From assembly GCA_964057225.1 (NCBI GenBank), contig OZ059898.1:15252001-15316000 (forward strand): a stretch of 64,000 nucleotides of DNA, given 5' to 3'. The notes beneath the pieces were generated by a model that worked only from the letters and a program-made list of their open reading frames with translations, had not been told where the DNA came from and made no database searches. Origin of the DNA: Auanema rhodensis (lineage: Eukaryota; Animalia; Nematoda). Within the stretch, counting starts at the first letter, position 1. The number at the start of each line of letters is the position of its first letter. This document shows, piece by piece, positions 16,387 to 64,000 of the stretch. The position numbers and the translations under genes are program-made.

Positions 16387-16439
<53 letters not shown>

Positions 16440-22314: not shown

Positions 22315-22356
<42 letters not shown>

Positions 22357-25300: not shown

Positions 25301-25591
25301 GGCACTAGATAGATGAACATTGAGGGGAGAGAGAGAGAGAGAGACAGAGAGAGAAAGAGAGAAAGACAGGAGATGGAGTGAATATTATCATAATAGTCCC
25401 AGCACGAGGATTGAATCTTATCAAAGTTTTGAATAAAGATATAATAAGAATAACAGAGAATATATGTCAAAATGGACTGGATAGCTTATAATCATTTATC
25501 AATGAACAGGAGCCTTATGTTCAATTTTTTCTATGAATAAGCTAACTGATTAGCTTGAAAAGGTAAAAAAGGCAAAATAAGAGATGAATAC

Positions 25592-25595
<4 letters not shown>

Positions 25596-25660
<65 letters not shown>
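25596..25660. repeat. (GA)n microsatellite
   Basis: Perfect GA run. Confidence 0.97.
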
Positions 25661-25665
<5 letters not shown>

Positions 25666-26233
25666 ATGAAAATAAGAAAAATATGTGATTACAATAAGTG
25701 TTACATGTCGTCGAGCTGTCTTGAAGGCATTTATTACGGAACAACTAAAATTACTTGTCGGTAGAGCTTTCAACCTCAATTTGAAAGCAATAACCTTTAC
25801 AACTTTACAACTTTAACAGAAAGAGTAATTGTGTTGAAAGAGAATGAGGAAAATTAGGAAAAGAATGGAATAACATATACTAAAAAGATGAAAAAAATGG
25901 AAACATGACGACAGATGAAAGAAAAGACTCGAGAACGATTTGAAGAGAGAATCTCACGCTTCCATATTCTATCACGTTTTTAAGCGAAATTTTCTAAAAG
26001 CAAAAAATGCATTCAGCATTAGAAAAAATGGGGATAAACATATATTTTCTGAACATATTTCAGGTCTATAAGACATTTAGAGTAAGGTTATGTGAATAAT
26101 GGATTGCCATCTCTCATAACCGATCAAGAGAGTTTGAGAACTGAGAGAAGAGGAAGGAAAGATATACAGAGATATCAAATAAGATTATACAAGTAATGAG
26201 AGAGAGGTACTGAAGAGGTAATGGTTTTGAAAG

Positions 26234-34800: not shown

Positions 34801-37800
34801 CGTAGAGGAACTCTTGAGAATTGACTTGGCTCTCCTTGGTCACGAGCTTCTATCTCTACTTCAAATTCTTTAATTTTCTCATAATCGATTCGATTCTTAA
34901 AACAGAAATATGTTTTTTACATACATATATATGAATTTTCAAATACCTTAATCGTCACAACTGGTTTGAATGGATCAGCTATTTCAAGAAGATCCGAATG
35001 AGGTCCCGGCACAATGGAATATTGTATAAAGCTATTTGGGCCTGGCTGATCACGATCAACAGCTTCGAAGTCAGCAAAAACAATTGTTCCTGAAATAGAA
35101 AGAAATATATTAAATATGAATACATGAATAATGAACTAACCAGCTGGTAATTCTTCTTTGATTGTGATGTTATACTCTTCAGCATCAAATTCTGGAGCAT
35201 TATCATTGATATCCTTGACCGTTACAAATACACTGATATTTAACTGAAATCATATAGTTAGCATAACTATATGATATCATATGAATGTAGTTTTGTATCC
35301 AAAAGTACAACATTTTATAAAATACTTTGTACTTTGGTTCCATTTCTCTAAGTCTTATCTTAAACTCTCAATTGATTAATCGATTTTTTTGAAAAATGTT
35401 CAGATGATGAATCTTCAGTAGAAGGCTAACAGTATGAAGGGATAAGCCCGAAAACAAGCAGAGAATCTATAGGCTTATCACACATTAAAAGTCAATAATC
35501 TTGTGAATTTCCTATTTAAACATTGAAAAGATGATGATGTACATGTATGTATATTGAAGATTTCTTCTTAATTATATCATATAATTTAAATATTTTACTA
35601 GTTATATATATATAGAAAAACCCGTTTCTTCAAGTATTATTTACATTAATCGAGACACTCAAATAGAGATGAGTGATAGACAGATATAGTTTATATAGTT
35701 TATGATACCTGATTGAAATCTGCATCAGCATCTGATGATTTACATTCAACAACAGCTTCAAAACGGCTTGATCCCTGAAATGAATGAATATGAAATTTTT
35801 AAAAATATTGAGGATTACTGTAAAATTTATGTGGAAAATGTTTTATTTCTTTTAACAAAATTTTAAAAAATGAATCAAAAATTAAAAGATCTTTGACCTA
35901 AGTCGTTTTCATTTTTATTTTCTTGTCCCATACTCATTTTTGTGTGAAAAATGAAGAACATTTTCTATTGTTAAGCTTTTGCAAATGGTATAGAATTTCT
36001 TTTCTTGAAGAGCAGTTTTGTAAATTAAAACGGCCATTCTTCATGTTTTAGCTGTCGTAAGTAAATGGTCAGCTTGTCTATATGCTATGTTAGTGTATGT
36101 CGAAGAAGTAGCCAATAGTATGTGATTTGTTTCCTCTTCCATCTACGTTTCTCTTTCTCTTCATACAGCTCTTCATTCTCTTTGTTTTACTAGACATACG
36201 AGCACTTAAAGCACATCGCTAGACAACAACATCATTATCATCGTAGCAGCAGCAACAGCAACAGAGCAGCACTAGCAACACCTATAACAGGCTACGACGA
36301 CAACGTTGATGTCGTTGTCGTCGTCACTATGAGATGCTTTGTAACATATGTGAGGCTACATTATTCGTCAAGGATGCACAATGAAACTCACACAATCACT
36401 ATCGAAGCTTGTATACACATATATACAATTAAATATCTCAAAGGTTTAGCACAAATATATTTGGACTAGATACATATGGTTAAAAATTCTTCTGATTACT
36501 AAACTAACCTCATCTCGATCGAGTGGAGTTTTTAACTTCAACTTCTTAGTTCCGGGTTCGATATCAACAATATCATTGCCTTTGACAAGTTTTAATGACA
36601 GTTCGGGCTTTTCACCCGTCACTGTTCCCTGGATTGGTAGCTCACCCACAATTTTTCCTGCAAGAAAATGAAGTATAAAACTTTTTTTTTTCAAATTTAA
36701 ATCAGATATGAACCCCCATGGAGAATAGGATGATCTATAATCGCTAATGATCACAACAGCCGACAGATCCCAAAAAAAAGGAGTTTGATGTTTAACATTC
36801 ACTTCATATGACATGTTAATTCCACAAATGAAAACAGGAAATTCTTAGATGAATAAGGTATTAAATGAGATTTCTTAGCGTGGATTCCAATTTAACATTT
36901 TTTTTGTTTTCCTTTGATAATTAGCGTTTTCTACACCATGACTGTTTCTCAACTTCATCACATTCCTTTTCCCAATTTCCTCGTTTCTTCTCATTCTTCA
37001 ATAGATCTCACATGCATTGTTCAAGCCGTTTGTTCGGCTGTTTTATTACACTCAAAATAATTTGCTACATACAGTCTATATTTAGAGAATAACAAAAGCT
37101 TTCCATGTAACCAATCAACGCGAAACGACAGATGAAATGACGCAGTCATCTCTTCAATAACCAGGTTCAACCGGGATTATGCGAAATGAGCCTAATCAAC
37201 CAGCTGGTCGTCCAATTGCTGTCGACTTATCTCAAGTTATTCAAGCATCTTGCACTCAACTCAGATAGGAAGAAACATACAAGCAAGAATCATGAAAATT
37301 CATTTTTCGGAATTATTTCGTTGCCAAATCGATTCAATATTATGAAAAATATTTAATAATTTAGAAAATTAGCATACCAAATACATTATGAAGTGGTTAT
37401 TAGAATAATTAAAGATTCTCACGTGGCACGTGGCACGTGCTTCATTCAATTTTCATGCAAAATATGACACGGTTGTACATGATTACTTCCTACTTCTTGT
37501 TTTCTTTTAGTCAATAGTTTGTTTGTTTTCATTCAATTATGATAATTAGTTTTATATAAAGGGATTTAATATATATGTATACATATATAAACATAATATT
37601 TATATAAAATATACTATACATATAGTAAACTTTAGGTAAATGACCATGCATGTATAGCAAAGACTGGTATAAGCATAAAGAAAAACCGGAAGATAACGAG
37701 ACTAGAGGTTATACCGTCTTACAAGTGACTTTAACGCCATTGCCCCCCCCCCCCCTCTCTCTCTCTCTCTCTGAACGGTTTTCGTTGCTTCAGCCTCAAT

Positions 37801-41700: not shown

Positions 41701-44700
41701 ATATGTCGTAAAGCTGAGATAAAGACAGTGAAACCTGTGGCGTGTAATGATTGACCTTAAGCCTAATCAAACACAAGCAGTAAAGTAGTTTGCCAAATCC
41801 AGATCGAAAAGAAAAGCAGCAAGAGACATAGTGAGAGAAATGTAGAACGAGGTAAGAAGAGATTGGTGAAATCAAGAACATGTAAGCATATTCCTATATT
41901 ATATTCAAACTTAAACTAAACAAGACACATCAATAAAGGTAAGAGAGGGGAATGAGGAAAAGCCATAGCATAGCAGTAAAGAAATTATGAATCAAGTCAT
42001 GCCTATAAGTGTGTAACGAGAATAGCATTTATCTTCATACATTCATAGATACATCATATACAGGTATCTATAGAAATATAATTTGACATCCTCACTTCAA
42101 GATTAAACTACAAATAAATAGAAAAATATAAATATTAGTTTATAGTTTGATTCCTTAAAATCGAAGTTTATCATGCACAGCACAGGCATACATGTTGTGC
42201 AATTACTATTAAAACACAAGAAATGACATAGAAATAAATTACGAATTCCAGTAAAATCTATATCTTCAAAAGGTATTTTATCAGACAACAAAGGCGTTTT
42301 CTTTACCAACTTTTTTTCTAAGAACTTTCCTCCGATTTTCTAAAAGTAGAAAGTGACAGTTCCAGGTTCACTGACACATGTTCAAGGTAAGCATGCATAT
42401 TATGCCAATTTTCAATTGAATAGCAATTGCTTGCGACATACAAACTAACTTCAAATTTCTTTGATTTCTTTTGTTAAATATCGACAATTTTTGGATAGTT
42501 TTATCTCAAATTATAATTACATAATTCTCATGGCAATAATATCACATGTACCTATCTGACCATTAAGTTTATTCATCTGATTCTACTCTAAGTTTAAACA
42601 TTTTAAAAGCTAAACAAGAACAATTAATCGCGGTTTATTACGAAATAAAAACATGAAAATTTGATTTCTCATAAATGGGAAAGGTACGGCTTCAAAAGAT
42701 CCCGACTGTCCATCATGATCTACATGTATGGTAGAGATGGCTGGCGAACTGATTTACGATGAGCGATGTCGGGCAGGTTCCCAGATAATCTAAAATCTTA
42801 ATTTCTTTCCGTTTTTTTTCACCCATTTCCTGATTCATATTTTCAATTCTATAGAATATTCGTCGAAAGGTCTACGAACATAACAATATGAATTCAGCGT
42901 TTCTAATGATACGATGAAGAAAAAACTGCAAAACTGTAAAAGGTATATGAATCCCAATATGACTTTCAACCTGTTCCCCTGACACAGTGCTTGATGAAAA
43001 CCGGTACATCTTTACCTCAAGAGTGTTGTCTATTCCTAACTCAATGAAGGGAAATCTGCTGTTTCAATGACAATTGAGTTATATATTTCAAAAAAAAAAA
43101 AAAAACAATTTCAATCTCTTTGAAACGACAGAATTTCCACTCAGCGTAACTGACTTGTCCCCTTTTCCTATTCCAATATTGTTGGGTAAGGTAATCTGAT
43201 TAGCATATTTTACACGTGAGCATTTTATTTATTGAATAAAAATTATAATGAGCGGTTGTATGGCAAAACAAACATATTATACGTACTTATTAATGAATTT
43301 CCATTTTATTTTACATTTTCATTATTATCTAATAGATGGTTAGAAATATCAAATTTGGGCGAAAAATCGCATCTGAAAGGCATCTTGATGATCATCCAAT
43401 AATCTTCAACAGTGCCTTTCTGTTAATTTGTATGAATTAGCAACGATTGGAATCTGTCATCATCCACTTAGCTTAAACATGTGTTAAGTCTTTGTCAACT
43501 CTTAGCTAGATTTTCCAGAAGCCAAGAAGAGAGAAGTATTACTCTTGTACATAGGCATCGTCTATATACAGAGAGAGAAAGATTGGGAGGGAGAGAGAGA
43601 GAAAGAAATCACACAGTGTCAACTCAATTTCTTTAATTACCAATTATCTGTTAGTATGGTAATCTGTCGGATAAAGCAATTGATTAGAAAAGGATAAAAA
43701 GAAAATTTGTCCATTGTTCACCAACCCTGATTTATATATTATTTTTTCTTTCACATCACTCAATTCTATAAGCAATTTTTAAGAAGAATATAGGAAAAGA
43801 AGATTGTTATTTTGGTTTTTTCGTTTTTTGTTTCTTAGATTATAACTGGAAAGGCTTCATCAGTATACATTTACTGAATAATAACAAGAAAATATTTGCG
43901 AATATACAGAATATTCATTGATAGCGACTTATTTAGACAACTAGTACCCTCCCAAACAATATTAAAATATAGCGCGACAATATAGTACTAACTTATCTGA
44001 TATATTTAGTATATATATATACATATTTTTTTCTATTTACTACTCGAATGACTAGCTTTACTAGAGAACAATTATATATATGTGGTGAAAAATATTTATA
44101 ATAATATATATTGGATATGTCATCTCATTATAACTATTAAGAATACATTGGTCTAATTAGATTGTGCTCTTTTGGAAGCACATGAGGGATAAGGAAGATG
44201 AGCATTATTCACGTAAGAATACCCGATAACCAACAGTGAAATAACACAATAATAACATGAGTAATATGCTCTTAAGAGGACAAGATCCAATAACTTGATT
44301 AGGTTATAATAAAGCTTCAGCATTATATAGTATATGTGTGTATGAATATCTTCTACATATATATATAGGTTATGAATATATGTATACAGCTTATATTAAA
44401 GTTCTATTTGGGATCCTATACTTGAGAACATATTCACTTGAAACTATTTCCCTTGAAACTTTAAAATTTACTAGTGTAAAACCCCTCAAATATGTAAAAG
44501 GAAAATCACAGCAACATTTTCCTATATTAACCATGGTAAAATAGAAAATAACGCCATTTCTTTCTTTTATTCCTAAAGTTCAAAGCTCGGAAATTTTAAT
44601 TCAGACCTCCGGTAAACCTTCTATAATGTGCACTTACATTCACTTCTTTAAATTCTTTATTCACACTTAGTTTCTGAAGCTGTTTGCGCCAAACTAATCA

Positions 44701-45694
44701 GTTACTTTATACTGTGATTAGTAGAGGAATTGCTAGAATAGAATGGAAAAACTACGTGAACCAATTTGCAACAGAAAAAACATGAGCACCGAAAAATGGT
44801 GAACAGCAATTTCCTCTACCTCTCCAAAATTTTCCTCAATTACATTGAAATATTGATCAGTAACCTCTCCAATTTTCCTACGAACTCTTGTTTCTATGGA
44901 ATCCATTTGAAAAAAGATTCTCTCTTGTTTCATTAGAAAACGAAAAATTTGACAATAAATCATTAATTATACATAAAGGGTATCAATTCAAGGAAACATG
45001 ATGAGTATTCTTACATTGCTTTATTTGAGTAAGCAACTAACGATTACTTTACACATGCATATATAGAAAATAAAATGTTCTGAATTAGTATTGCCATCAA
45101 ATTATCAAAAAAAGTATTGGATATACAAAGTTCCCTCCAATTTATGAAACTTTTCAAATATATCTTGTTATGTTACAAAGTGTCGAGTCGAGTATCTGAT
45201 TTCGATTAGTCACTCTACTTTTTCATGGAACATTACAAACCAGCGTTTAATAAGCTTTTTAGATGTTTCAAAAAAAATTTATCTAAGTCAATTGATTAAG
45301 TATAGTACAAAATCCAAGAATAACTCATACACTAAGGTCCATTGATTAGTAAAAAAATTAACGAATACCTACTCTTAAAAAAAACCAATATTTTCAAGTA
45401 CGAATTAAAATTTAACTTTCCTAATTATAAAAATTTCATTTAACTTTAATTCAAATAAAATAGCTACAAATAAAACTATATTACACTTGCCCGGCTATTT
45501 GAACAGAACGTATGAGATATCTTCATAAAAAATTAAAGGTCTGCGTTTCAATTTTCTCAAAAATATTTGGATACGGTAACCCGAAATTGCGCTGTTTTGT
45601 CATCATTTGAATCGTATAATTTTCTATTTATTTATAATTTTTATCTTTGCTTTCACAGGTTCCTTACATTAACGGTACCTGAGATTTTATAGAA

Positions 45695-48600
45695 ATGCAA
45701 CTTATTCTTAATGCCTGGAAAAACCGTGTTGGAGGACCAGTTGACGCAAGTAAGAATTAAACAAAAAATCCATTTGTAAGCATTAATATTATTAGGTGCT
45801 TTTTTGCAAACATTAGAATCCCCCAGAGCTTTACATAAGGAGAAGGAACTTATTATTGAAACTTTTGACGATTGGGATGTTTTAACTAACACTTGGTTTG
45901 AGGTAATTTTTTTTAAAAACAATTATCTTATATATAAAATTATCATTGTAGATTGCTGATTCCTTACCTTTCATTGAAGGCTTGTTTGAAGATATTACCT
46001 TCCCTGCTCGTCAAAAGGCCGCTCTTCTCGCTTCAAAGGTTTACATTAATTTCAGCTTTCAAATTATTTGTGAAATTCAGGTTGCATTTTGCCTTGAAGA
46101 TTATAAACTTGCTCTATCTCTTGCTCTCTCAGCTGATGGAGCTTTTCAACTTTCTCCCCGTCCATCATCTAATTTAGTCGGAAATAAAGATGAAGAAGTG
46201 ATACTTAATAATTATTTTAAAATTTTAATCTATGTATTCTAGTATGTTAACAAAATTATCGAAGTAGCCTTGGATTCATACAAGGTTGCCAGAAGTGAGG
46301 ACGAAGAAATTGATTCAAGATTAGAAGCTTTGGTTAATCGCCTTTTTGAAAGAAATCTAGAGAAGGTTAGCTTTTTTTCTATATAAATTATTACATTTAA
46401 TTTTTTTATAGAAAGAATTCCGTTATGTTGTTGGGCTTGCCCTTGAGACTAGACGTGTTGATATGGTTGAACGCGCCATTAAAGCTAGCAATGATATATC
46501 AGGCATTTTCTTTTTATCTTTTTTGTGTTATATAGGCTGTTTAGGATTATTAACTGAAACTGTTCAAAAGGTTCTTGATGGTCATCTTGATGCTTCGCTT
46601 AGGAATTCCCTCCTTGATATGCTTCTTGGTATATTCTCCACTCAAGATCAGCCAGATTTTGTTGCTCTTGTTCAGGTTTGTTAAATTAATTCAACTGTAA
46701 TGATTTTACTTTTTCAGTGTCTCATTCGGCTCGAGAAACCAGCTGATGTTGCTGATTTGTTGAACCGACTTTTGAATCAACCTGTAAGTTTAAATTATCC
46801 AAATAGCAATACTATTTTTTTTAGGAAGGCGAGTTGTTAGCTTACCAAATTGCTTTCGATTTATATGAAAACGCATCTCAACAGTTTATTGGCAAGATCT
46901 TAACTGTTCTTAACTCCGAAGAAGCATCAAGGTAGTTATTAGATTACATCATACGAATTATTTGTTTATTTTCAGATCAGAGTCCAGCGAATCTCCTGCT
47001 GATAGCACCAAGAAGGTAAAGGATATTCTCGTGGCTTGGGAAGCAGTAAGTACTCAGTGTGCTGCATGCCTGAGACTGCTTTTTAATATTTGACAACTAA
47101 TTCCACCAAACTAAATTAACAAACACGTTGTCTTAGCTTAATATTTGTTGTTTAGGTGACTCCTCACTCCCGTTTGAGAGCTATTCTCAGAGGCGAGGAG
47201 ACTATTAAGCATCATATGCAATTCCTTATCAAAAATAATCACACAGATATGCTAGTTTTGAAGGTCAGAGTACTTTATAAGTTTTTTAAACAGAATTTTC
47301 TTTTACAGGAAATGAAAGATTATGTACGTACTGCTACAGCTCACAATGCCACTTTAATGGCCAATGGTATCATGCACTTGGGTACAACTTGTGATGATTT
47401 CTTGAGAGATAATCTCGATTGGATCAGCAAAGCTACTAACTGGAATAAATTCAATGCTGTTGCTTCTCTCGGTCTTATTCATAAGGTAATTTCATCATAC
47501 TTCTGTGTCATGATTATCATTTAAAGGGACATGAAACTGCTGCTATGAAGCTTCTTGAACCATACTTACCAAAAACAGAAACTGATCAATTTGGTTTCAA
47601 AGAAGGAGGATCTTTATATGCACTCGGTTTGTTTCTTTGTATCAATTTCTTTTTATTCGCTAAATTGTTATTCCATCTAGTTTCATTTTTTTTCATTTTG
47701 AGCTTTTCTCTCAAGTTTGAGCTGTAGCGCGTTTGGCTATTGAATTTTCGCATTTGATTTAAAAAAAGCTTCTCAACATGGTCCTCAAAATGGCTCGATT
47801 ATAATTACGATTTTTAAAGGTTTGATTCATGCTAACCACGGAAATCCCACTGTCATCAAATTCTTGAAACAAGAAGTTGCCAATGCTTCCACTTCCGCGG
47901 TTCGCCACGGAGCTTGTCTTGGGTTGGGATTGGCTGCAATGGGAACTCACGATCAGGAAGTTATTACCAAATAGATTTCTGTTTTGAAATAATTGTTTTT
48001 CAAGGTTTACTTGACCCTTCGTGATGCTCTGTACCTGGATGATGCAGTTACTGGAGAAGCCGCTGGTTTGGCAATGGGTCTTGTCATGGTATAGGATCAT
48101 GCAAGAAAAAGCTCACTTCATTTAATTTCAGGTTGGAAGCTTACATGAAACTGCTTTCACTGAAATGGTTCAATACGTCAGTGATACTCAACATGACAAA
48201 ATTCAGAGAGGTCTAAGAACCGGAATTTCCCTTCTTGCCTACGGTTAGAATTTGCATTTGTTTGTGATAAATGGTTCACGCTTTTAGGAAGACAAGAGGA
48301 GTGTGAGAAAGTAGTTACTCCTCTCCTCGAAAACAAGAGTAATGCTGTTCTGAGAGCCACTGGTGTTTGCATGCTAGCTATGGCTTATGTTGGAACTGGA
48401 AAGGCAACTGTTGCTACCAGACTTTTGGAAAAAGTGAAATTATTAATGATGTTATGGGGAACGTTTAGTGTTGTTCTTCCAGGTTGCAACTGATCCCAAT
48501 AATGACGTGAAACGCTTCGCTGTAATGGCTTTCGGATTCTTGTTGATCAAGTACGTGTTTTTTTTCTTTTTGATTTTCTTATTTCTTCAATATTATGAGG

Positions 48601-51600
48601 GGAAGTGAGGAAAAGAAAAAAGTTATCGATAACGTTTTAATGCGAAATACTAAGAATACTGGTTTGTACAAACGTGTGACACGAGTAGATATGACTACCG
48701 TTTTGATAAAAAAAATACATGTTAGGAGGAACCGTGAGAAAGAGGAAATACACGTATTAAAGTATGAAAAATTCTTCAAATGGAACATAAAAATAAATAA
48801 ATATGGACATATATCTTGTGAGCGACCAGTGAGTGAGCAACTTGTTGGTTTACAGAAAAGTTTCTTTTATTTGTTTACCAAAAGCGGATGAAAAAAGTGT
48901 CAAGTGTTGAGGACAACTATTGGCGGAGGATGACATAGTAGTATCAGTATCAGAACTATCCATCATACATCTGCAGCGCTGGCAATCCATACAGGAAACG
49001 GATTTCGGGAAATCAGAAATATTAATAGTACTCGGCGTAATTAGAGTGGTGAAGGACTTGCGGATGACGACAGAAGTATAGATACGAGGTGGTATTAGAG
49101 GCTTTTGCTCGCTTATAATATCTTCATCACTGGTTTCTTCCGTCGTTGCTCGCGAGTCCCTGAATACGCTTCCGCTCAAACTGGGTTGTTGACTGGAATC
49201 CTACAAAGAAAAACGTTGAGAAATGCTCAAAAACGTAATTGTTAACCTTTTTCTCTCTGCTGGTTTTACTGTCATCACTATTTTGTCTTTGCCAAGAATC
49301 ACATCCGTTTTTTAAATTTTCTGTCGCAGTCGTTTCCTCCTTTCCATTAACGGATACCATTCTTTCATGATTAGACCTGAAAAAGTTTCATTTTATGGCT
49401 TAAAAAGAGGTTAAATTTGTGGAAAAAAGTTGGATATTTCTATATGGGAACTAGCTGTTGTGCTGATGAAATATCAATGGATACGTACTTCCGGTGGATG
49501 TGGGTTTGCCAATACAATGGCTTAGTAATCTTTATTCCACTAAATAACTAAATGCTTTGTCTATTTGAATTGCTCTAGCGATTAGGTCGAAGTCTTTTCA
49601 TGATTTATAGTTTCACATATGGAGGAAGTTGGTTTTTTCTTTTTTCGAAAAAAAAATTTGATTGAAGCTCTTCGTAACTTGAGATCGTACATGTTATTTT
49701 TTGAAACAGAATTGTGTATCTGTTTTGAGTAAAGTCGCACGTTTATCTTACCAAGGTGATTACGACACATTGGCGGCTGTTCCAAGTATCGAATATCAAG
49801 ACCTGGTTGCTCTCAAAGCAGAAGATTATATACACAAGGACATGGGAAGAAGGTTAAAGTGAAAGCAAAAAAAAATTTCCATCTTCTTGTACTCTTGGAA
49901 AACTACGTCTACATTTGCGCCTAAGAATATTCTGCGCCTCTTATTTCTGCTATGATTTATTCAGGAAGACAATTGATTTTTGCGCGTCTAAACCTTTCGC
50001 CAGATCCTCGCACGGGAGGCACTCAACAGTGAATTCCTAACTAAGAAGAACGACAAAGACTCACCATGTGTAGGTGTCTGGAATGACAGTGGTGAAGTTA
50101 CGTGAATATAAGGCACTTTGATCTCTTAAGGGATGGAAGCACTGACAACGAAGGATCCGTACAAAAGCTTGTCGGAACCTCTTGTTGAATACAGTATAGA
50201 TAATTGGATTAATAGTACTGGAAATATAACCAAGCCATAGGAATAACGAGCCAAGCCATGAAGGAGGAGCACAATCGGAACCACAAAATCCCATGATAAA
50301 GTTAGCAATAAAGAAAGGTGTCCAGCAAATAAAGAAGCAAATAAATACGACAGCGAGTACTCTAGTGGCCTTGTGCTCATTTGCAAGTTCTTGACTTGCT
50401 GCCTGTAAATTATCAATTTGAATGTGATTTTTGACAGATGGGTTTTTATTTGTAACTTGCTAACCTGTAATGAGCTTCTGCGACTTACACGACTTGCAAT
50501 ACTAGACAAATAATTAGATGTTCTGGACTTCCATCGGTTTATCGTAGATGTTTTTGTCAACACAGCATGTCCGTTGGACGTTTGTGACTTGCTCTTTTTC
50601 AAAGTAATCAACTTGGTCATGTCTGCATCCGTCAGGCTTGGCTGATAGCTATTTGAATAACTAGCAATGCTTGTCTTGGGGCCGTTACTGCAATTTAAAT
50701 CGTATGGTGACGAGATATATTTTGTCACCTGTTACTGCTTGATTTGTGAGTTCCGTGGCTAGCGAATCCATTAGTTGACGTCGAGTTTGTTCGTACATAG
50801 CCTAGTTTCCTATGGGGAATCGTGCGGCGTAGCCCGTTGCCGTTCAGCTTGTCGTTCGCACGTTGGCTCAAAATGGATGCTTGCTTGTTAAGCAGATTTG
50901 TTGTGCGCACATAGGTGACAGCCATGATTCCGAATGGGATAAGGAATGTTAAAGTCGACCCGTAAATAATATAGTATTGACTGAAAACTGTGAATAAAAG
51001 GAGGAATGTTTAGGAAAAGCTGTACCTGAATATCATGCAGGTGTTATCTCTGAGAATATTTGTATTGTCAATAACTGCTAGTACTGCTATTGGCGAAGAT
51101 ACTAGTAAAGTTATGAACCATACCAAAGCTATCTTTGTTAGAATCATAGTTTTTGACTTATTGCGTGTTCGAAGAGGCTGAGAAATGCCTAAGTACCGGT
51201 CCAGCGAAATGACGGACATATGAACAATACTGGCACTGCACAGAAAAACGTCAGCATATACATATAGAAGACACATAGACACGTTCCATGTCCATAGTCC
51301 TGAATTTGGAAATAGATTAAATATACGTCATATATCCCTAGGTTTTTAGTGGTGCACTGAGATTGTCAGGGTGGGCTTTTCAACTGTTTGTTTGTATAGT
51401 GTGTGAAATTTTTCGTTTACCTTTGCTTATTATTTGCAAGAAACAATGTTTAAAATGTACTGAAGAATAGGAGCCGTCATGATTAAGGGTTTGGTTCAAA
51501 ATTCAGTAGATAGAAAATGAAAGTTATAAGAATGAGGGAGTTGACTCAATGAGGATTCATTACTAATATTATTCAAAGTTAATGATACAGAAGAATAAAA

Positions 51601-54600
51601 CAAACCGTGTCTAACTTCAACTACTATGCTCAAAGGCATAACGATGCAACAGACTAATAGATCTGCTAAAGCCAGTGAAAACAAAAAATAGTTGGTAACA
51701 TTATGCAGCCTTCGATCTGTGCTAATTGCGATGCATACTAATGCATTACCTGAATAGTTCATGATGAAACAGAAGGAAATGAAAAGAGAAGTGGGGGTGG
51801 AATTATTGAAATTCTAGCAGTTTCGAAAAAAGGCCAAAGCTTGAAAAGATAATCACCAATCAATCCAACAAGGCATAGTGCCGGTAATAGCAGAAGTGCT
51901 AAAACGTTAAGAGTATGTCTAGGATTGGTCATCTGAACACGTATAGAAGAAAATTGCCATTGTGTCATGTAGGCATGGGATGTTTGATAGAATGGAAGCG
52001 AAGAGGGGCAAGAGACGAGGCTAGGCCGACCAACGCCTTGAGCTGACTGGCGGCAGCTCCGCCCCTTGAAATACCCGCCTCTTTGAAAAGAGAGAAGAAG
52101 AAAGGAGCAGTATGTATGTATCACACTGTGATTATTCTGAAAAAAAAAACATAATGGTAGAAAGCATAGAGAAATAGTAAACTAGAAACTAACTCGCTAT
52201 TCGGGTTTATGTTGGAAAAATTTCTAGTTTGATTTGGAGTGATAAAATGTGAGAGAAATGTATATATGTGAAGGTATTGTAGTCGGCTGTTTTAAAATGT
52301 TATGAGGGTCAAAGTAAACGGATATTATCCTATGGTTTCAGTGATCCCGAAATCTGCTTATCTTACGTTGGAATGCTCGTGGAACATTTTAACAGCTATG
52401 TAAGATATGGAGCTGCTATGGCTCTTGGAATCGCTTGTGCTGGTTCAGGATACAAGGTTAGTTTTTCCTTTTTTTTGTTAAGATTTTGTCATCGGTGCAA
52501 CAGTTGTTTTTGATAGCTTTTTGTGGTAACGTGAAAATTCTACTTTCATTCTAGTGTATTGAGATTGGACTTTGGTGGTCCCATTTGAATATGAAATATG
52601 AAACCCACGTTTGTCTTATTAATTCCTGATTACTCGCTTTTGGAGTTGCATATGCTAAACGTTTGGGCTTCAATATTTAAATCATTTACCTCTACGGATG
52701 AGTTTGTCATTTCGTGAACTCATTCTTTTATATCTATCCTATTTCATTTGAAGTCCTCAATTTTTGAGTGTCTTATTGACGATAGGCGAATAAGAGATTG
52801 AGCACTTGACGCGGAATCTGCTTGAAGATAAACGAAATTGGTAGGGGGGGGGGATAGATATTTCATAAAAAAATATGCTAGCATTGTCATTAAAAGCTCG
52901 GGAAGTTATAAAACTTTATTTTTTTCCGCAATATGTGTCATTTTACAATGGTTGATTTCCTGTTTTTTACAAAAAATTTTTTATTCACACCTTCTGTTTG
53001 TTTTGATGTTATTAAAACAAAACAGAAAACAAATTCCATAGAGGAATGTCTATATTTCTGACTTGTCAGATCTGACTTTGCTTGTTTCCAGGAAGCTATT
53101 GCCCTTATCGAACCCTTGTTATCTGCCAAGGAACACTACGTCAGACAAGGAGCTGTCATCGCCTTGTCCTTCATTCATATCCAACAGACGGATGCAACTT
53201 GTTCTAAGGTACGTTTTATATTTTTCCTTTGTTGTTGTTGTTGTTGTTGTGATAGCTGTTGCTCAAAGCTTTCACTTATAATGCGGACTTGCCAAAGCAT
53301 GTAAGGATCCATCAGATTATTTGCGGAGAGATTTAAAATTTTTCGCATTTTTTTTGTTTAAGTTGTTACTTCTGAAAAATTGAATAGACTTCAGAAATAC
53401 TGCTATTCCATTAGATAAGACAATTTTCTATAAGTACACCTAATTTCATGATTATGGACGATTCATTCTTGACACTTTGTGAATTCTTCTGCGGGAATTG
53501 GTGTAAAAGATTAGCGTATATATGCTTGACGAGAGGTTTTCAGCAGGGACTTAAAGATTTTCTCACATTATCTGTTAAGTTGGAAACTTCTTCTAATCCA
53601 TTCAAGTACAAATATTTGATGAATGTGCAAGCTTGTAACAAGTGAAGATATTATCAATGCCGTTAAACTGTTTGATATCCCTCTTCTAAAGTTTTCAAAA
53701 TAGCTGAAGAGTTCTTATATTTACTTATTTGGTGTTACTGAATTGCTGATTTACACATGTAACTAAAGCTGAGCTTGCTAAAGAGTGGTATTCATCTTTG
53801 TAACATCTTCTTGCTTTTATTTGGATTTCTACTATATTATTCTTCACATTTGTTTGTTGGCACATTCACGCAGTTGTGTTTTGTGGAACTCTTTTTGATA
53901 CTCAACTTGACAAAACATCTTGACTTAGAAATAGGTTTTATGATGCAGCGCATCTACCACATCTAGTAAACAGCGACAATTTGCCAAAACTAAATTTTCA
54001 TAACTTTATGCGGCGGATCTGATAACCTGTGGCGCTATAGCTCTTGACCATTCAAGCGGCCTTTTTAGTGTAGTTTGAAAGGGCGTGGAGATGCTTTTGT
54101 TGTGAGTTCAAAATTTTTGACGTTACATCATATCTATAAATAGACTTTCTTCCACAGGAAGTGAATTCCAACTTAAAGAAGCTTTGTGGAGATGGCCGTG
54201 GTGTCAATCAGCTAGACACATACATTTTTAATTCGGCAAGACTCTTAGTGACCCGTTAGCGCTTGTGAAAGTTAGCTGTACGTAATAGGACATTCGAAAG
54301 GGAATTGTTTTGAATGTATACTACGTTTATTTAATTCTTTCCCAAATCTAGCTTTTGCTTTATTCCCTTCTTGAGTTGTGTGTGTGTTCTTTCTTTTACA
54401 TATTATCCATGCCAATGTGATGCGGGAAGTAGAGCTTATTATTTACGCACAAGAAAATAGCTTTGTCTATTTTTTTTACTAACTGTGAAGTATTCTCTGA
54501 GGATTCATTCGTCTGAGACCGCATTTTTTGGTTGTGCTTTTTTGTCACCAATTGAACTAAGCTTTCACAAAAAGACAAGCTTGACAAATGCATATTGTGA

Positions 54601-57020
54601 CGGCAATTGGGAATGGTTGCAATTCGAGGAAAGTAAATGTGAATTGATAAGATACGCTACCAGTTTAAGCTTCTTTGTTTGCCAGCAACAAGAAAACAAA
54701 TTGTTTAAGCTTTTCTATGCTTTCATTTTTTGCAGGTTTCGGAATACCGTAAGCTTCTTAACAAGATGATCACAGATAAGGGAGAAGAAGCTATGGCCAA
54801 GTTTGGAGCATTCATCGCTCAGGTATTTTGTTAAAAAAATTTCTGTATTTACAGTTTTTAACAGGGAATTCTTGATGCTGGAGGTAGAAATCTTACCATT
54901 TCCCTTCACAACCGAACCGGACATCCTGATATGGGAGGTGTTGTCGGTATGATGGTCTTCCAGCAATACTGGTACTGGCATTCTATGGTGAACTTCATTT
55001 CCTTGGCTACTAAGCCTACCTGCCTCATCGCTTTGAACAAGAATTTGGCTGTGAGTAATTAAACTGCTTGAAGAGAAACATGTGCTTGTTCAGATGCCAA
55101 AGATGGAGTTCAAGTGCAATGCCAAGGCATCCATGTTTGCATACCCACCAATTCTTGAATCGAAGAAGAAGGAAGAACAGGAGAAGGTATTATTTGAAAA
55201 TTATAAAAGCGTTTCAAACGTTCTCTTTCTAGGTTGAAACTGCCGTTCTATCTATTACCAACAAGAAGAAGCAACAGAAGGCTGCTAAAGAGGTCGTTAA
55301 GGAGGAGAAAATGGACATTGATCATCCAGAAGAGAGCAAAGATAAGAAAGAGGAAGAAAAGTACGTTGTTTTGAGATGGTTGCAAAATCTGTCACTACTA
55401 AGTTCATGCAAACCACTGGGGTTAAAGAACCACTTATTTTCTCATATTCGTAACAGTTTTGAATGTATGAGATCAGATTTCATTAATTTTTCCCATGATT
55501 AATCCTATTTTTATCCTGGAGGGACCCCGAAATAGCCGCACATCCGATGACTTATTCCAGTCCGAAGCTGTCGCACGCCCTCGCAGTGCGCACACTGGGA
55601 ACAGATAGATTTTGCTAGTAGCACGAACTTACACTTTAAAATGTGGAAGTTCTTTTTTAATCAGAGAGATAGCATTTTTTATTTAAAGGGAACGTGGAAT
55701 CTTCTATGTCTTTGTTTGTGGTTTCTCATTCCACATTTCAAACTTGAAAAACTATGGTTGAAATTTTCAAAGCCAACTTTATTCAGTTCTAAAGGCGATA
55801 AAGAAATTATTGCACGCCCTATTTCTCATCGAGCTTGGTTTTAGCTCTTTAATCTGGGATAGAGCCTGCTTTATGACTTGCTCGAAATAGGAGATCCGTT
55901 AAGAACCGTTGATTGAGGCTCGGCAGGGGGCTTGAACGCTTTTCAAAAGTAGTATTGCGTGATTTTGATATGGGTTAGAGGGCACGACTTCTTGTTAGTT
56001 TGTGGATTTGTCCTGAAAGTTCTTTTCGTTATGATGTTCCCATAAGTGATTTCTTACCAGGGTCATTACAACGGTCTTATATATGGGTCCCATTAGTTGT
56101 GCGTCATGGGATTCTTCCTGAATGTTTTTTCACAAGTGGTTGATCTGTCACAGCACGAAAGCTATATTTTATCCGCAGTATGAGCAGTGCCAGAAAGAAG
56201 TCAATCATGGCAAGAGTCGGACCACCTGTTTACATCAGCGTGGGGGGGGGGGACTAAAAATAAGGACGACTACTTTTCATTTCGATGGATGAATTCATGT
56301 TTTCTGAATTGGGGGATTCAAAAGTTCTTTTTAATTTTTTGAATTCTTTCACTAATGATGTAGAAGTTGTATACATAAACTCAGAATAGGAATATTCTGC
56401 ATATGTCTTTGTTTCTGGCGTTAACAATGCTCAAGTTTTTTGTCATGCAAAATATGTGTCGTTGTCAAAGAAAATGCCTTTTGATTTAGAGGAAGAATGT
56501 ACATTAATAATATAATAATTAAATTGTTTTCAGGAAGCCAGAAGTTGAGCCTCCTTTCCACAACATTGAAAATCCTTGTCGTGTAGTTCGCCTTCAACTG
56601 AAAACTCTGTCTATGCCCGAAAATGCCAGGTTTATAGAGTTTTCTTATTTCAATGTTTGACAGCGTAATGGTAATTCAGGTACAAACCTGTGAAGGCTAT
56701 TAATCAAGGTGGTATTATCCTAGTAAGAGATCGTAAACCTAATGAGGCTGAAGAACTGGTAGCACAGGTAAATTATTTTAGTTGTTGAGAACTTTTGAAA
56801 ATACACAAAAGAAATGAACAAATATAGTCCTACAAAGTATGCAGAATTTCTTTCATGAAAAAACAAATAGAATAAGCTTTGGAGTGAAAAGCGGAAACAT
56901 TTTGCCCACATTTATCTTCATTTTGTGTTTTAGGTTGTCGCTGGTGGAACAACTACTGATCCTGCTGCCCCTGAAAAGGAACCACACTCAACTTTTGAAA
57001 TTGATCTGAGCGAGTACTAA
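45695..57020 (+). CDS. rpn-2: 26S proteasome non-ATPase regulatory subunit RPN-2 / PSMD1
   Basis: Many exons giving [164 protein letters not shown], ending [12 protein letters not shown]. Confidence 0.97.
48850..51932 (-). CDS. ser-1: 5-HT2-like serotonin receptor SER-1 (class A GPCR), nested in an rpn-2 intron
   Basis: About 8 exons (approx. 51857-51932, 51606-51749, 51027-51299, 50729-50980, 50465-50687, 50065-50403, 49246-49377, 48850-49201). Motifs: [100 protein letters not shown]. Very short N-terminus and C-terminal ETFL PDZ ligand, as in C. elegans SER-1. Confidence 0.96.
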
Positions 57021-57452
57021 TTTATTAAATTCCTACGGCGTCTCATAATAAGCACGGTTTAATCGTTCCTCGCCTTTGTTCTTATTTTTCTTTCCTCAAC
57101 AATTTCCTTGTATGTAGAGCTGGCGGATGTGTCAGACATATTTATTGCTTGAATGAACAGTGGTCCATTCATTTCTATCTTATTAGTTTTATTAAGTGCG
57201 TTGTGAAAACTACAATTCGTCTATGGAGATCTAATTTTTTTCGAAAAAAAAGATTCTATTACATATAGAAATACATGGGAACGTAAAACCCGTTTTAAGC
57301 TGGGAGGCTTATTATTTTACAATTAATGATATACAGTTGAGCTCTTGTCAATGACAAGTGATTGTTTCTTTCGTCTTGGTAGACAATGTTTCCTTTTTTT
57401 ACAATGAAATTCACTGATGACTGTGAAGCAAGAATGAGGCTAATCCTTCATA

Positions 57453-59945
57453 TTACGGGCTTGTTCGTGGAATAGATGGTTTTTCCTGCCATTGTCCCTG
57501 AAGTTTCTCGAAGTACAGGTCTCGCGCTTCGTCTATAGTCACACTATCAACGTTGCGATGTGAACTTGCGGACATGAAGCGATCAATTTTGGTAATACGG
57601 AAGAAGGATCTGAAAGACGATGAGAATGGCTACACTTCTTGCTTTATGATGAAATTACCTTTTGATGTTTTCGGAAAACATGGGCAATAGAAGTATAAGA
57701 AGTAGGGTGAGAATTGGAATTAACGTTATCTGCAAAGGAAAATTCTCTATCTGGATTTCGAGAATCTAGGGGCATTACTTGAAAGTCAGCGAAAGGAGCA
57801 TAATCTTCTATTTGTCTGAGTACACTTGTAGTTACTACGGTGTCTCTCGTAAACAGCGGAAGTTTCATCATGTAAACCTGAATTGTTTTGATACGATTAC
57901 AAGAATATGCTGGCAAGAGATTGCCTAACTCACAATATCTGCTGAACTAGTGAGGCCGAGGAATATGATCATAACTGGAATCATCAAACGAGTTGTACTA
58001 ATATTTTCTTTCAGCTGATATCTAGTGGATAATACTCGAAGCTGAGAATCAACGAGATTTTTCTGAAATATCAAGAATAAAAATTAAAAAAGTGGAAATT
58101 CAAATGGAGTATCATGCTTTACAGCTGAAAATCACGTGGTGGTGATTTCAGTTTTTAATAGATGCTTGCATAAATGGAACAGCTTTTAATTTTATGAAAA
58201 ATCCCACCAAAAACTTTTTTTTGATTCTTAAAATTAGTTTAGAAGGCCATCTGGTAAGAAGGAAATGAGCTTCGGTCCCGCTTCACTTGTTCGCTTTTTT
58301 TGATATCACGAAGGCAGCATGATGCTGTCGATGTAGGAAGTAGAGAAGATGTACGTGGAATATCTGATGTAGAACTCTACGACTTCAAGTAGAAACTCAG
58401 AATTTAGCAGATAAGAAAGCAGATGAGGGGGTGTTTGGAGAGTCACATATCATTTCTCGAAGTTACGTAAGACGTCTATCTGATCAGCTTAGCTAATGAT
58501 CACGAACGACTGAATGATAAAAACAAAAATTGTTAAGCAGACATTGAAAAGACAATGTACTGTTTCCGGTCAAAAGAAAGGTTCAATCACATCGAATTTG
58601 TCATTTATGTTCAAGAAGGAAGTTTTTATTTGTCTTCAAAGTGAATGACTCATAAAGTTTTAACTAAAACTACAATAATTTTGAATTAAACAATGACATT
58701 TAACTTCGAATTTGATTTTTGAGCATTATAATCGTGATAGCCATATAGGAGAAACTGATATATTATTTGGAATGAGCTAAAGGGAAAGTTTGGAAATTCA
58801 AATTGTTTGATATAGTAGATGAATTACAGTTTAAAACTTTTAAAAGTTGTTGCGTCTCTACGTTGACTTCTCGAATTAGACGTTTTTGGCAAAGAATAGA
58901 CAACCGTTCGCTGAATGCTTGTACAGCAAGTTATGATCAAATCAAGTAAATATGCTTTAGATGTACGTGATAGTTGACGTGAATATGCTAATTATGATGA
59001 CGTGAGAAGCAAAACATGAATTTACCGTTCGAGATCGATTGATTAGCCATAGATGTGAAAATATGAGTAGTGCTAGGATGTTGAATCCCACAAGAAAATG
59101 GCTCATGAACAAGCTACCAGCTCCATTATTCTGAAATCACATCCATGTTGAGATTTGAAATGAAATTCAGAAATCAGTTACAAATTCTAATGAGCAGTAT
59201 GGTACGGTCCGAGGGCGTGACGTAGAGATATAGATGTAAATACAGGCTGAAGCCTAGAAGAAGAAAAAAATGTAAGTCGAATGAAAAGATATGATATTGA
59301 GAAGAAGATGCAAGTAAGCCAGATTTGACAAATATTTACTTGTAAGCTGATGAGTGCTAATCCGAACCAGCCATTAGAAATCTTCTCGTACGTTTTGAAC
59401 ATGATTGTTGCAACCATTCTTTCAATTGCTAACAAAACAGTTGAAAGAGCTATTCCAACTCCACCAGCAGCATAAATTGAGCGCAAACCTTAAAACCTGA
59501 TGCTGATTCGCGTTTGAGTGAGCCGAAATAAAATGAGATTGATAAGAGAGCTCTGAAACATACGATAGCATGCTGACGGTGCAAATACTTGAAAATCGCA
59601 TCGGGATTCTTCAGGTAAAACATAAGATATTACAAGGGTATAGAGAGATTCTGATAAAACACCTATAAACATGGAATTATTTAAAATTTAGTTAGCTATG
59701 CTGATTATATGTGACCTACCTATGTTACATATAATCATTGAAATAGTTACGCTGACAAGTAACAGACGAGCATTAACATGAAGTAGCTTTGTATATGCTA
59801 TAGCTATACTGAGTAGACAGATACCCAACAAGCTTACAGGCCCCAGTATCACTCGAAGTATTAGTGTGTAGTGAATGAATGAATTTGGAGCATAGATGTT
59901 GGCTGCGGAACCGCAGAGCTCACAACGAGTACAATTGATACTCAT
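57453..59945 (-). CDS. Nematode serpentine chemoreceptor, Sra superfamily (srab/sra/srb-like)
   Basis: Spliced protein contains LLHVNARLLL, LLAIERMVATIMFKTYEK, LSTRYQLKENISTTRLMIP and C-terminal DLYFEKLQGQW. These are hallmark Sra-superfamily motifs. Hydrophobic segments are consistent with a 7TM fold. Confidence 0.88.
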
Positions 59946-61068
59946 CCGTCCGTTGTCTAGCTGCTATCCTTCCGGCAAATTACGTTTATATTGTATTTCA
60001 GCTGATAATTCTGAAACATAATTCTGAAGACATACATAGCTAGGACAAGACATCATTCAACAACGCTGATCGTTATCAAACAGCAAAGGACTCGGAAAGT
60101 ATAGAGAGGAGGAAACATAATTTTTGGAAAAAGAAGGTTGATATTACAGATGTGTTGATTGGTATAGCAAGCGATTTATACATAAATCGTAAATTCATAA
60201 ACGAAACATTAGAGAGAGGGAGTAAGAGAGTAAGAGAGTGAGAGAGAGAGAGATAGAGAGAGAGAGAGAATAGTTATGATTTGATCTTGAGAGTAATAGA
60301 TACAATACTTATAGAATTAAAACTTTTTTAGAAGAAGACTTTTTCTCCTTTATATGATAGGATAATTCGATTTTCTTTCTGCTTTAATGTGAAAAGAACA
60401 TGAGAATGATTAAGTAAAACTGAAAATTCGAGAAAGACATACAGAGACAGGAGAAAAGATGATTAAACGAATATGATGATGAAGAAGCAAGTGACAAGAG
60501 TAAAGAAAATACTCTAAAATCGTCGTCAGATACTGATGCTGATGGGTTGGAAGTCTATATAAGAATTGAGTGTTGTTGCAATAGAAGCACGATTACGAGC
60601 ATCATGATCGTGATGACGCCAATGGTGATCAAGTTGAGGAGCTAAGACAGGGCGAAGATGAGAAAAAAATGCTTTAATAACTGAAAAGTTGGCTAAAAAA
60701 GGAAAACTTTGTTATTTCTGATCATGAAGCCAGAAATAGAAAGAGGTTAATAATGATATTTGTATGATATGAATGACTTTTACTTTATTCTTTAAGAAGA
60801 AAATAATAGAAAAATGAATTTTTAATAATATAAATAAACAAGAAAAAAACTTTTTTTTTGTATTAAAATATTCAGAAGAAGTAAAAAACCAGAATCTTCA
60901 ATTATGTTTCAAAATAAAAGTTAAAGTTGTGCTATGAATCTGAAACTTCTTAGAAATACATACATATGTTTGAAATTTTAAATTCTAATTAGAGTATGCG
61001 GAAATTAAAAAAGATAATAATTAGTCTATATAGAACAAACTTTTACTATATGATTTGAGGAGATGAAC

Positions 61069-61091
61069 AGAGAGAAAGAGAGAGAGAGAGA

Positions 61092-61168
<77 letters not shown>
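61069..61168. repeat. (GA)n microsatellite
   Basis: About 100 bp near-perfect GA run. Confidence 0.97.
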
Positions 61169-61172
<4 letters not shown>

Positions 61173-61371
61173 TACTGGTTTGACAGGGACTTAATGAAAA
61201 CAAAAACAGAAATATACAATGTTTCAAAGTTTCATTGAAAAATGACAACATGAATGATGTCGACGACTATTCATAGCCAGATTTATTCACATAATAAGCT
61301 AATTCGAAAAACAAAAAAAAGTTTATAAATATTGAATTCATATATGCGTCTTGAGAGTAAGATTGAGAAAG

Positions 61372-61413
<42 letters not shown>

Positions 61414-62028
61414 TCTGAGAGTGGAGATATGCTATGAGAATTATTAACAAGCTGGTTTTCAAGATTGAAATCATGAAAGAGTATATTTTGATGTTTTGTC
61501 TTCTCATTGAGAATAATCTGGAAGATGTAAAAGGAAGAATATTCCGGAGAAGACAAATTTGGATTGAGCTTTCTCACACTTCCGGAAGAAAGAGAAGTAT
61601 GATGATGATGATGATATCGGGATTCAAAGAAATCTCTCATCTTACTTTCATTTAGTTTTCGTATTTGCAATATTGTGAATTGAAAGTCAATTGTTTCTTT
61701 TTATAAATTAATAAAAAACATTAATTAAATGAAATAAAGGAAGAAATTAATTAGTTAAAGGATGAAAAACGAATTAATGACAATATCTATATGAATAAAT
61801 TAGAAATACATTAACATACAATTACAGTAAGTACACATAATTAACATTTTTATAAAAATTTATAATTTTTATAAATATAAATATAATAAATCAAATATGA
61901 ACATATTTATAAATTGAGAAAATAATAAGAAAAAAAAACAAAAACAAACAAATTATGTGTGAAAGAGAAAAGAGAAAAGGTGTGTGTGTGTGTGTGAAGT
62001 GGAAAGAAAGAGAGAGAGAGAATAGAGG

Positions 62029-62087
<59 letters not shown>

Positions 62088-63119
62088 ATAAGGAAGGATG
62101 AGTTAATGCAACCTTCCTGTCGACTTTGCCGCGATTAAATGACTTGTATAGTAGACACGTCACGTCATCCCATATACATATGCTAATTAAGCTTTTCACA
62201 ATATTAAAATAAACATTTATCATATATAATCAGTAAAATCTTGATAAAATCTTAATTCAAAGTACAGATATTGAAAATAAATGTTGAAATGCTGCAGTAA
62301 CTGTTGCATTGACGCTAAGTAGTGTAGATGTATCTGGTGAAACATGTATGTTGTTCTTAGCTTTATGGCTTTAAAGAGGACATTTAGCAATATTCCGAGA
62401 TAGGAAAGACATTCAAAAACATTTGAAAACAAGCTAATTCAAATAGAAACACTTATTTACTTTCAAAAATAATTAGGACATTTTCTAATATTAGTAAAAT
62501 ATGTATTTGAATTATAGAAATTGAATTTAAAAAAGTTGAGATATACATATATGGCTGGAGGAATGATGATGATGATGATGTGATATGATAAAACTTTGTT
62601 AGAAATAGTGATGGATAAGCGAGAAAATACAGTATCTGAGGAATTCGAAAATGGATTGAAAAGTTATAAAATATGTTTGTTTGGATGAAGAGAGATCGAC
62701 CAAATGAATCGCTTTCTCATCTTTAGCGTGAAGATATCTGTATTGCAAAATCAAGGCTAGCAGCTCAAGTTGCATGAAAGGAACACAAAAGAATTGATGA
62801 TGATGATGATGATGCTGTTGGCTTGGTTAGGCTTAGCTATGCTAGCCTAGGGTATGCTAAGATCAGATGGATCTATCACTGGTAGTGATATTGCTGTTGA
62901 CGGTAGGGCTTGATCATAAAACCAAATCATGATCATAGCAACAAATGCATTCCGTTGGAAGTAGATCAAAAGCGATCATAAATTTGGATTGGGTATGTAT
63001 CGGCACACTACTCATGATAGTATTTTTGACACAAATTTTCATATAAAGTGTGACCATCAGAAGGTGAACAACGATGCCAAATTACACAAAACTATTTAAG
63101 GGTACAATTCAAAATAGAC

Positions 63120-63131
63120 AGAGAGAGATAA

Positions 63132-63187
<56 letters not shown>
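63120..63187. repeat. (GA)n microsatellite
   Basis: Near-perfect GA run. Confidence 0.97.
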
Positions 63188-63190
<3 letters not shown>

Positions 63191-63617
63191 GTTGACAGGG
63201 ACTGATTGAAAACGTTGAGAGTTTCTATGTTTTATTTAGTATAGATAGACTGAGAATCTCGTTTAATTGGTGAGCAGAGATCGAGAAAATTGGATGAAAA
63301 ATGTACTGAAAGTAATTTACGTAAAACGTTAAATATGAATAAAGTATGATGTCATTGTTTTGAGAAAATTGTCAAAAACTTATCGAAACAACGTTTTTGT
63401 CTAAGAAGAGCATAAGCTTTTCTTCTATACAGTATAAACCTTTATGTTTGAATTTAAGGTATTCATTATATGAAATTGAAAGAGAAAACAGTTTTTTTTA
63501 GAGAAAAAAGCTTGTCAATGAAGATAAGAACAGACATTGGAAAATCATAACGATGAGCAGAAATAGACAAAAAGAAAGATATATGAAGAGAGTAGGTGTG
63601 TGTGTGTGTGTGTATGT

Positions 63618-63660
<43 letters not shown>

Positions 63661-64000
63661 GAAGTGAGAGAAAGAGATGTAAGAAAGGGATTTGTATAAA
63701 GTTTTATATTCAAAGTAACATAATGTATGTTTAAATAAATAAAAAAGAATAAAAGTAAAGTCAATACAATAGTTGGATAAAATTTCGTAAAGCTGATACT
63801 TGGAGTAGTTCTCGTCCTTTTCACCTTTTAGTGTATAACAAAGGAGATGAAGAAAAATCGAGAGATTAGAAAATCTTGTGAATGTTTGAATTCAAAGAAT
63901 TTCAGCGAAAAATTAAAAAACGGAAAAATTTGAAATAGTTTAAAACTATCTTGATTTCAGGAATTGAATTGAACGAAAAAATCATATGAAAATCTGCAGA

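Follow-up and report, generated by a model that had tools for sequence, protein, structure and literature searches.

In the nematode Auanema rhodensis, a complete serotonin receptor gene lies within a single intron of a proteasome gene, on the opposite strand, and both genes are expressed. The window analyzed here is a stretch of 64,000 nucleotides (nt) of contig OZ059898.1 (assembly GCA_964057225.1, positions 15,252,001 to 15,316,000, forward strand), and positions below count from its first letter. The host gene is rpn-2, which encodes the Rpn2/PSMD1 subunit of the proteasome, and the inner gene is, by its closest relatives, C-terminus and neighbours, the orthologue of Caenorhabditis elegans ser-1. 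An original prediction, made from the letters of the window alone, held that ser-1 is complete and antisense within one GT-AG intron of rpn-2; this is borne out by the sequence, with an eight-exon transcript contig at ~48630-52035 inside the host joint 48550/52342. By comparison with other nematodes, the nest is very probably ancestral and goes back at least to the ancestor that clades III and V of the phylum have in common.

The transcripts from both strands bear directly on this arrangement. Contigs from four runs (X1-X4) of one study were aligned to positions 47450-53400, where they are 100% identical to the window, with 0 mismatches. They are spliced and are therefore derived from RNA. One contig of 4.4-4.5 kb follows rpn-2 through GT..AG joints at 47482/47524, 47625/47819, 47959/48005, 48087/48131, 48242/48287, 48433/48483, 48550/52342 and 52456/53092. 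The seventh of these skips 3791 nt in frame, and the contigs of the four runs join exactly there, at the junction that had been foreseen. A lack of spliced reads between the rpn-2 halves, named with the prediction as something that would refute it, is thus not the case. A second contig of 2.06-2.11 kb (2059-2111 nt), again present in the four runs, spans ~48630 to ~52035 and has seven joints that read CT..AC on the plus strand; it is therefore spliced on the minus strand. The rpn-2 and ser-1 genes are thus both transcribed and correctly spliced, as two mRNAs from opposite strands. The locus shows what defines opposite-strand nesting: the whole inner unit sits in one intron, on the opposite strand, and the host is spliced across it in frame. 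Between the inner mRNA and the edges of the host intron there remain ~80 nt on the 3' side of the mRNA and ~300 nt on its 5' side. Within the 688-nt ser-1 intron at 49377-50064, low-depth contigs (~3) were seen at 49381-49836 in two runs, and these are probably unspliced precursor of rpn-2 or ser-1. A search of positions 44000-58000 with Rfam at gathering thresholds and with a tRNA scan gave no match, so no RNA gene explains the host intron.

At the host intron itself, the upstream exon ends in TTG ATC AA at 48550, followed by gtacgt, and the intron ends in tttcag at 52341; the next exon opens with T GAT CCC GAA ATC TGC. Translated across the junction this gives GFLLI-N-DPEIC, where the intron divides the Asn codon 2/1, so the predicted break at GFLLIN|DPEIC by an intron of 3.8 kb stands. 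The two short flanking exons have no Pfam match, and searches against the sequences of the Protein Data Bank (PDB) were used in place. The 22-residue upstream exon aligns to human PSMD1 608-626; all of its matches are Rpn2/PSMD1, at an E value of ~1, weak since the exon is short. Its peptide is 100% identical in Auanema sp. JU1783. The 38-residue downstream exon aligns to PSMD1 630-666 with an E value of 1e-11. The two exons are contiguous in the protein because these two PSMD1 segments adjoin.

The assignment of the host to rpn-2 comes from exon-by-exon homology to the rpn-2 genes of Caenorhabditis auriculariae (locus L001), Auanema sp. JU1783 (L006), Pristionchus mayeri (L010), Steinernema carpocapsae (L011) and Brugia pahangi (L012). 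Exons of the RPN2_N region, the PC repeats and the C-terminus were found in the window, each at exon level, and RPN2_N, PC_rep and RPN2_C are all on record for the orthologous loci. The RPN2_N match scores 24.6 bits on a single exon, where the cut-off for the whole protein is 27. The spliced contig of 4.4-4.5 kb represents a full-length transcript of the gene, whose longest stop-free piece is 261 amino acids. In its PC-repeat exons and RPN2_N match the gene is thus like Rpn2/PSMD1, including C. elegans rpn-2, the name given to C23G10.4 (PMC3630107). Unlike the C. elegans gene, it is stretched to ~11 kb, with another gene housed in one intron of 3.8 kb. A short simple repeat at 53219-53259, within the rpn-2 intron that follows exon 53092-53211, gives consecutive Cys codons in one of its frames.

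Table 1. Features of the rpn-2/ser-1 locus in the window, and rpn-2 annotations around ser-1 in the other nested species (TM, transmembrane helix; a handle in the second column marks a locus of another species)
Feature	Sequence	Position	Strand	Basis or remark
rpn-2 (Rpn2/PSMD1, 26S proteasome 19S subunit), host gene	window	45783..57017	+	approximate extent of coding sequence, exact first exon not fixed
rpn-2 RPN2_N exon	window	45982-46242	+	Pfam RPN2_N
rpn-2 exon preceding host intron	window	48483..48550	+	22 residues and 2 nt of Asn codon; RNA joints 48433/48483, 48550/52342
Host intron of rpn-2	window	48551..52341	+	3791 nt, GT..AG, phase 2 within Asn codon; removed in contigs of four runs
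rpn-2 exon following host intron	window	52342..52456	+	begins within the Asn codon, ends SGYK; RNA joints 48550/52342, 52456/53092
rpn-2 C-terminal exons	window	56523-56657, 56675-56785, 56934-57017	+	readable from sequence
ser-1 transcription unit	window	48630..52035	-	8 exons, RNA contigs
ser-1 coding exon 1, TM1	window	51857..51968	-	ATG at 51968; RNA joints
ser-1 exon 2, TM1-TM2	window	51606..51749	-	Pfam 7tm_1 scan, RNA joints
ser-1 exon 3, TM3-TM4, TM3 Asp and DRY motif	window	51026..51299	-	Pfam 7tm_1, PDB, RNA joints
ser-1 exon 4, TM5 and start of intracellular loop 3	window	50729..50980	-	Pfam 7tm_1 scan, RNA
ser-1 exon 5, intracellular loop 3	window	50465..50687	-	RNA
ser-1 exon 6, TM6-TM7, helix 8	window	50065..50402	-	Pfam 7tm_1, PDB serotonin receptors
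ser-1 exon 7, C-terminal tail	window	49247..49376	-	RNA joints
ser-1 exon 8, last coding	window	48853-49200	-	ends KETFL, then TAA 48850-48852; 3' untranslated region to ~48630
Cadherin exon	window	34671-34916	-	Pfam Cadherin, E 3.6e-6; left of nest
srab chemoreceptor gene (part)	window	59187-59945	-	Pfam 7TM_GPCR_Srab; right of nest
Nested, Auanema sp. JU1783	L006	6254-9958 and 13355-16287		rpn-2 annotated as two genes, 388 + 650 amino acids
Nested, Caenorhabditis auriculariae	L001	3347-9827 and 15315-22024		rpn-2 annotated as two genes, 349 + 670 amino acids
Nested, Pristionchus mayeri	L010			one 902-amino-acid gene around ser-1
Nested, Brugia pahangi	L012	4447-8245 and 16258-21336		rpn-2 annotated as two genes, 358 + 740 amino acids

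The inner gene has a complete open reading frame, which opens with the ATG at 51968, closes with the TAA and counts 607 codons; its internal splice sites are all GT/AG. A second in-frame ATG at 51932 corresponds to the start in the JU1783 model, which gives a protein of 595-607 amino acids. It has the marks of a rhodopsin-family amine receptor: four of its exons match Pfam 7tm_1, and YADVF and LDRY can be read in the translation of exon 3. Among solved structures in PDB, the 5-hydroxytryptamine (5-HT) receptors 5-HT2A, 5-HT2C and 5-HT2B are the best matches of the TM3-TM4 exon, and the TM6-TM7 exon likewise matches serotonin receptors. When 1.8 billion representative proteins were searched with the TM6-TM7 exon, nematode receptors came out on top, among them C. 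elegans F59C12.2 and C. briggsae CBR-SER-1; the same exon is 88% identical to C. auriculariae protein P0001. Its closest orthologue belongs to Auanema sp. JU1783, the two being 85.6% identical over exons, as befits an Auanema-like rhabditid. The C-terminal KETFL, a ligand of PDZ type, is common to the window gene and 13 Rhabditina orthologues, F59C12.2 included, that is, to all Rhabditina checked. SER-1 binds the multi-PDZ protein MPZ-1 (PMC3282746, citing Xiao et al., 2006).

C. elegans SER-1 is a 5-HT2-like, Gq-coupled receptor. The window gene resembles it in an identity of 63% over aligned exons, in the KETFL terminus, in a TM3-TM4 exon nearest to 5-HT2A, 2C and 2B, and in neighbours that are the same as those of the C. 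briggsae orthologue. On these likenesses the nested gene encodes a 5-HT2-like receptor and is orthologous to C. elegans ser-1 (F59C12.2), with orthology judged from closest relatives, KETFL and shared neighbours. The two differ in that the window gene sits inside rpn-2 and the gene of the C. elegans group stands alone, and in that the window receptor is known from its sequence.

The distribution of the nest was followed through the genomic surroundings of twelve ser-1 orthologues, with flanks of 10 kb, which were searched by tblastn with the rpn-2 exons of the window, each as a separate query. In all four further species in which the nest was found (Table 1), ser-1 lies on the opposite strand between the orthologues of the two rpn-2 exons that border the host intron. 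The splice site and phase are also identical in the four, with AA|gt ... ag|T or C and then GAT or GAC. The three split models, those of C. auriculariae, JU1783 and B. pahangi, each consist of an RPN2_N half and an RPN2_C half, cut exactly at the nested ser-1. With Steinernema carpocapsae, where a homologous intron of just 46 nt is retained at the host position, the same intron position and phase are shared by five other nematodes. In S. carpocapsae a compact and complete rpn-2 stands 5.3 kb from ser-1 in divergent orientation, with ser-1 near the rpn-2 5' end and the cadherin gene on the other side. Most introns of the C-terminal half have been lost from this rpn-2 (L011 1379-4704), where the tblastn matches are contiguous.

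The 10 kb on either side of ser-1 yielded no rpn-2 exon in C. briggsae, C. bovis, C. angaria, Diploscapter pachys or Mesorhabditis spiculigera, nor in Haemonchus contortus or Angiostrongylus costaricensis. A relaxed tblastn with the two flanking exons, accepting matches to E 0.01, found no rpn-2 remnants beside ser-1 in the non-nested species. C. auriculariae, which is nested, belongs to a basal lineage of its genus (PMC7991662).

The layout of the locus suggests how it may work. The host intron ends with ~300 nt in which ser-1 would have its own promoter. Upstream of ser-1, the introns of rpn-2 are long, with lengths of 635 nt, ~1.5 kb and ~1.2 kb, and most of those on the other side measure 41-49 nt. 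The long introns may hold further control DNA of ser-1, which would help to keep the pair together. A polymerase on rpn-2 would have to read through ser-1, and this could be tolerated as the receptor is probably active in few cells. In C. elegans, nested pairs show less co-expression than ordinary neighbours, and the inner gene can induce short transcripts of the host (PMC12274878).

That the locus is a true nest could be doubted from public annotations, since the models of C. auriculariae, JU1783 and B. pahangi split rpn-2 at ser-1, as if its halves were separate genes, or as if the locus were misassembled and had no true host intron. We give this next to no probability. It is refuted for the window species by the single contig, present in four runs, in which 48550 is joined to 52342 with the frame kept; P. 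mayeri is annotated with one gene around ser-1; five independent assemblies agree; and neither half alone makes a complete Rpn2. As to the origin of the nest, two histories had been offered with the original prediction, one of ancestral nesting and one in which a local rearrangement in this lineage produced it. With only C. elegans for comparison, the window looks derived, since the species of the C. elegans group have ser-1 without rpn-2. The same intron, phase and orientation in C. auriculariae, P. mayeri and B. pahangi nevertheless refute a rearrangement in the Auanema lineage, which is left extremely improbable. The ancestral history has held up, with the same intron, codon and phase in JU1783 and in these three species. 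The nest is placed in a common ancestor because intron, phase and orientation are identical between Brugia, of clade III, and three branches of clade V that are separate from one another. From this ancestral nest, the present distribution would have come about by several later dissolutions. In crown Caenorhabditis, rpn-2 is no longer part of the block, in which ser-1 and its neighbours remain; it has likewise gone in Diploscapter and Mesorhabditis, probably also in strongylids. The ser-1 of Steinernema now lies just outside rpn-2 and the old host intron appears shrunk to its present length, pointing to local rearrangement. C. elegans is, judged from these loci, the derived state for rpn-2 and ser-1.

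Several points weigh against ancestral nesting, or against parts of the account given here. If the Steinernema state is ancestral, the nest needs two origins, and clades III and IV are represented by one species each. For the strongylids Haemonchus and Angiostrongylus, the 10 kb flanks may be shorter than the host intron, so that absence there counts for less. All RNA evidence goes back to a single study and takes the form of assembled contigs whose library type is unrecorded; these do not record strand, exact ends or the use of a spliced leader. The positions given for the promoter and enhancers of ser-1 are themselves inferred. The Steinernema locus, with ser-1 so near to the 5' end of an intact rpn-2 and an intron kept at the host position, also lends itself to a history in which the two genes were ancestrally mere neighbours and ser-1 entered the same intron repeatedly, or once in a group excluding Steinernema; the lack of the nest in many lineages fits this too. 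We consider that history highly unlikely all the same, since independent entry into an identical intron in an identical orientation in clades III and V is hard to credit, and ser-1 keeps its cadherin neighbour in both the nested and the un-nested state. In the accepted nematode tree, clade IV groups with clade V, and the Steinernema state is then derived.

A cause for the loss in crown Caenorhabditis may also be sought in the sex chromosome, in that selection on rpn-2, an essential gene expressed in the germline, would have favoured its leaving the germline-silenced X. In C. briggsae the ser-1 block is on the sixth and last chromosome record, of 22.2 Mb, which we take as the X from the order and size of the records, and lon-2 is nearby in the window genome. 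The rpn-2 gene of C. elegans is autosomal, on chromosome III. Against this, C. auriculariae keeps the nest, and a special cause is not needed where the nest was lost in Diploscapter and Mesorhabditis as well and was undone locally in Steinernema. The loss is not special to Caenorhabditis because it occurred in Diploscapter, Mesorhabditis and probably strongylids too, and we hold the X as the cause to be unlikely. A joint reading would combine these strands: a very old nest, at least from the clade III/V ancestor, held by receptor control DNA interleaved with the rpn-2 introns, and dissolved in crown Caenorhabditis by moving rpn-2 off the germline-silenced X. Taken whole it is distinctly doubtful; if true, the pair would give a datable and testable example in which the silencing of a sex chromosome drove two nested genes apart.

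The prediction that linkage of ser-1 with a cadherin gene is kept is confirmed by a Pfam Cadherin exon on the minus strand (Table 1). This cadherin gene runs leftwards from ~38760 and is collinear with the cadherin gene of JU1783. The srab chemoreceptor neighbour on the right is likewise present in L001, L004, L005 and L006. The block of srab, ser-1 and cadherin in C. briggsae is the same as in the window; C. bovis has ser-1 and the cadherin gene, and C. angaria has srab and ser-1. The DNA of Auanema sp. JU1783 aligns at 70-78% along the whole locus, and because of this its conservation within the introns marks no functional elements. Two single-copy non-coding stretches in rpn-2 introns, at 54350-54593 and 56025-56264, match JU1783 at 82% and 74%. 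In that species the counterparts, at L006 4693-4939 and 5269-5498, are not inside rpn-2 but between the srab gene and the rpn-2 3' end, which amounts to a small rearrangement, between the two species, of non-coding pieces that are conserved. Farther out, positions 16000-26000 and 60000-64000 have strong positive GC and AT skew on the plus strand, with GC skew up to 0.37-0.40, and many short simple-repeat matches to L006.

Nested genes as such are common in nematodes, and 567 opposite-strand nested pairs made up of protein-coding genes have been counted in C. elegans (PMC12274878). The comparison closest at hand is ceh-10 inside polq-1, a nest shared by C. elegans, C. briggsae, Pristionchus, Onchocerca, Brugia and Trichuris (PMC12274878). 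Like that pair, rpn-2 and ser-1 combine a tissue-restricted gene, whole and antisense, with one intron of a broadly needed host; in both pairs the two genes are transcribed and the nest is conserved over long nematode distances. Unlike it, ser-1 in rpn-2 does not occur in C. elegans and hence falls outside the 567 catalogued pairs, and it is known here from sequence and transcripts. The literature searched holds no mention of rpn-2 and ser-1 as a nested pair. The nest is thus a well-supported example, new to the literature searched, of a common arrangement, and of modest interest.

Its value lies in what it adds to that record. The pair is an expressed and deeply conserved host and nested gene that the C. 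elegans catalogue could not contain, since C. elegans appears to have lost it. The essential rpn-2 is broken into two false genes in at least three public annotations, those of C. auriculariae, Auanema sp. JU1783 and Brugia pahangi, and this distorts orthology tables and gene counts; for the window species such a split would be wrong because spliced RNA joins 48550/52342. Crown Caenorhabditis, Diploscapter, Mesorhabditis and Steinernema, set beside their nested relatives, offer natural comparisons of un-nesting, from which it may be learned how nests are kept or broken and whether expression changes with nesting.

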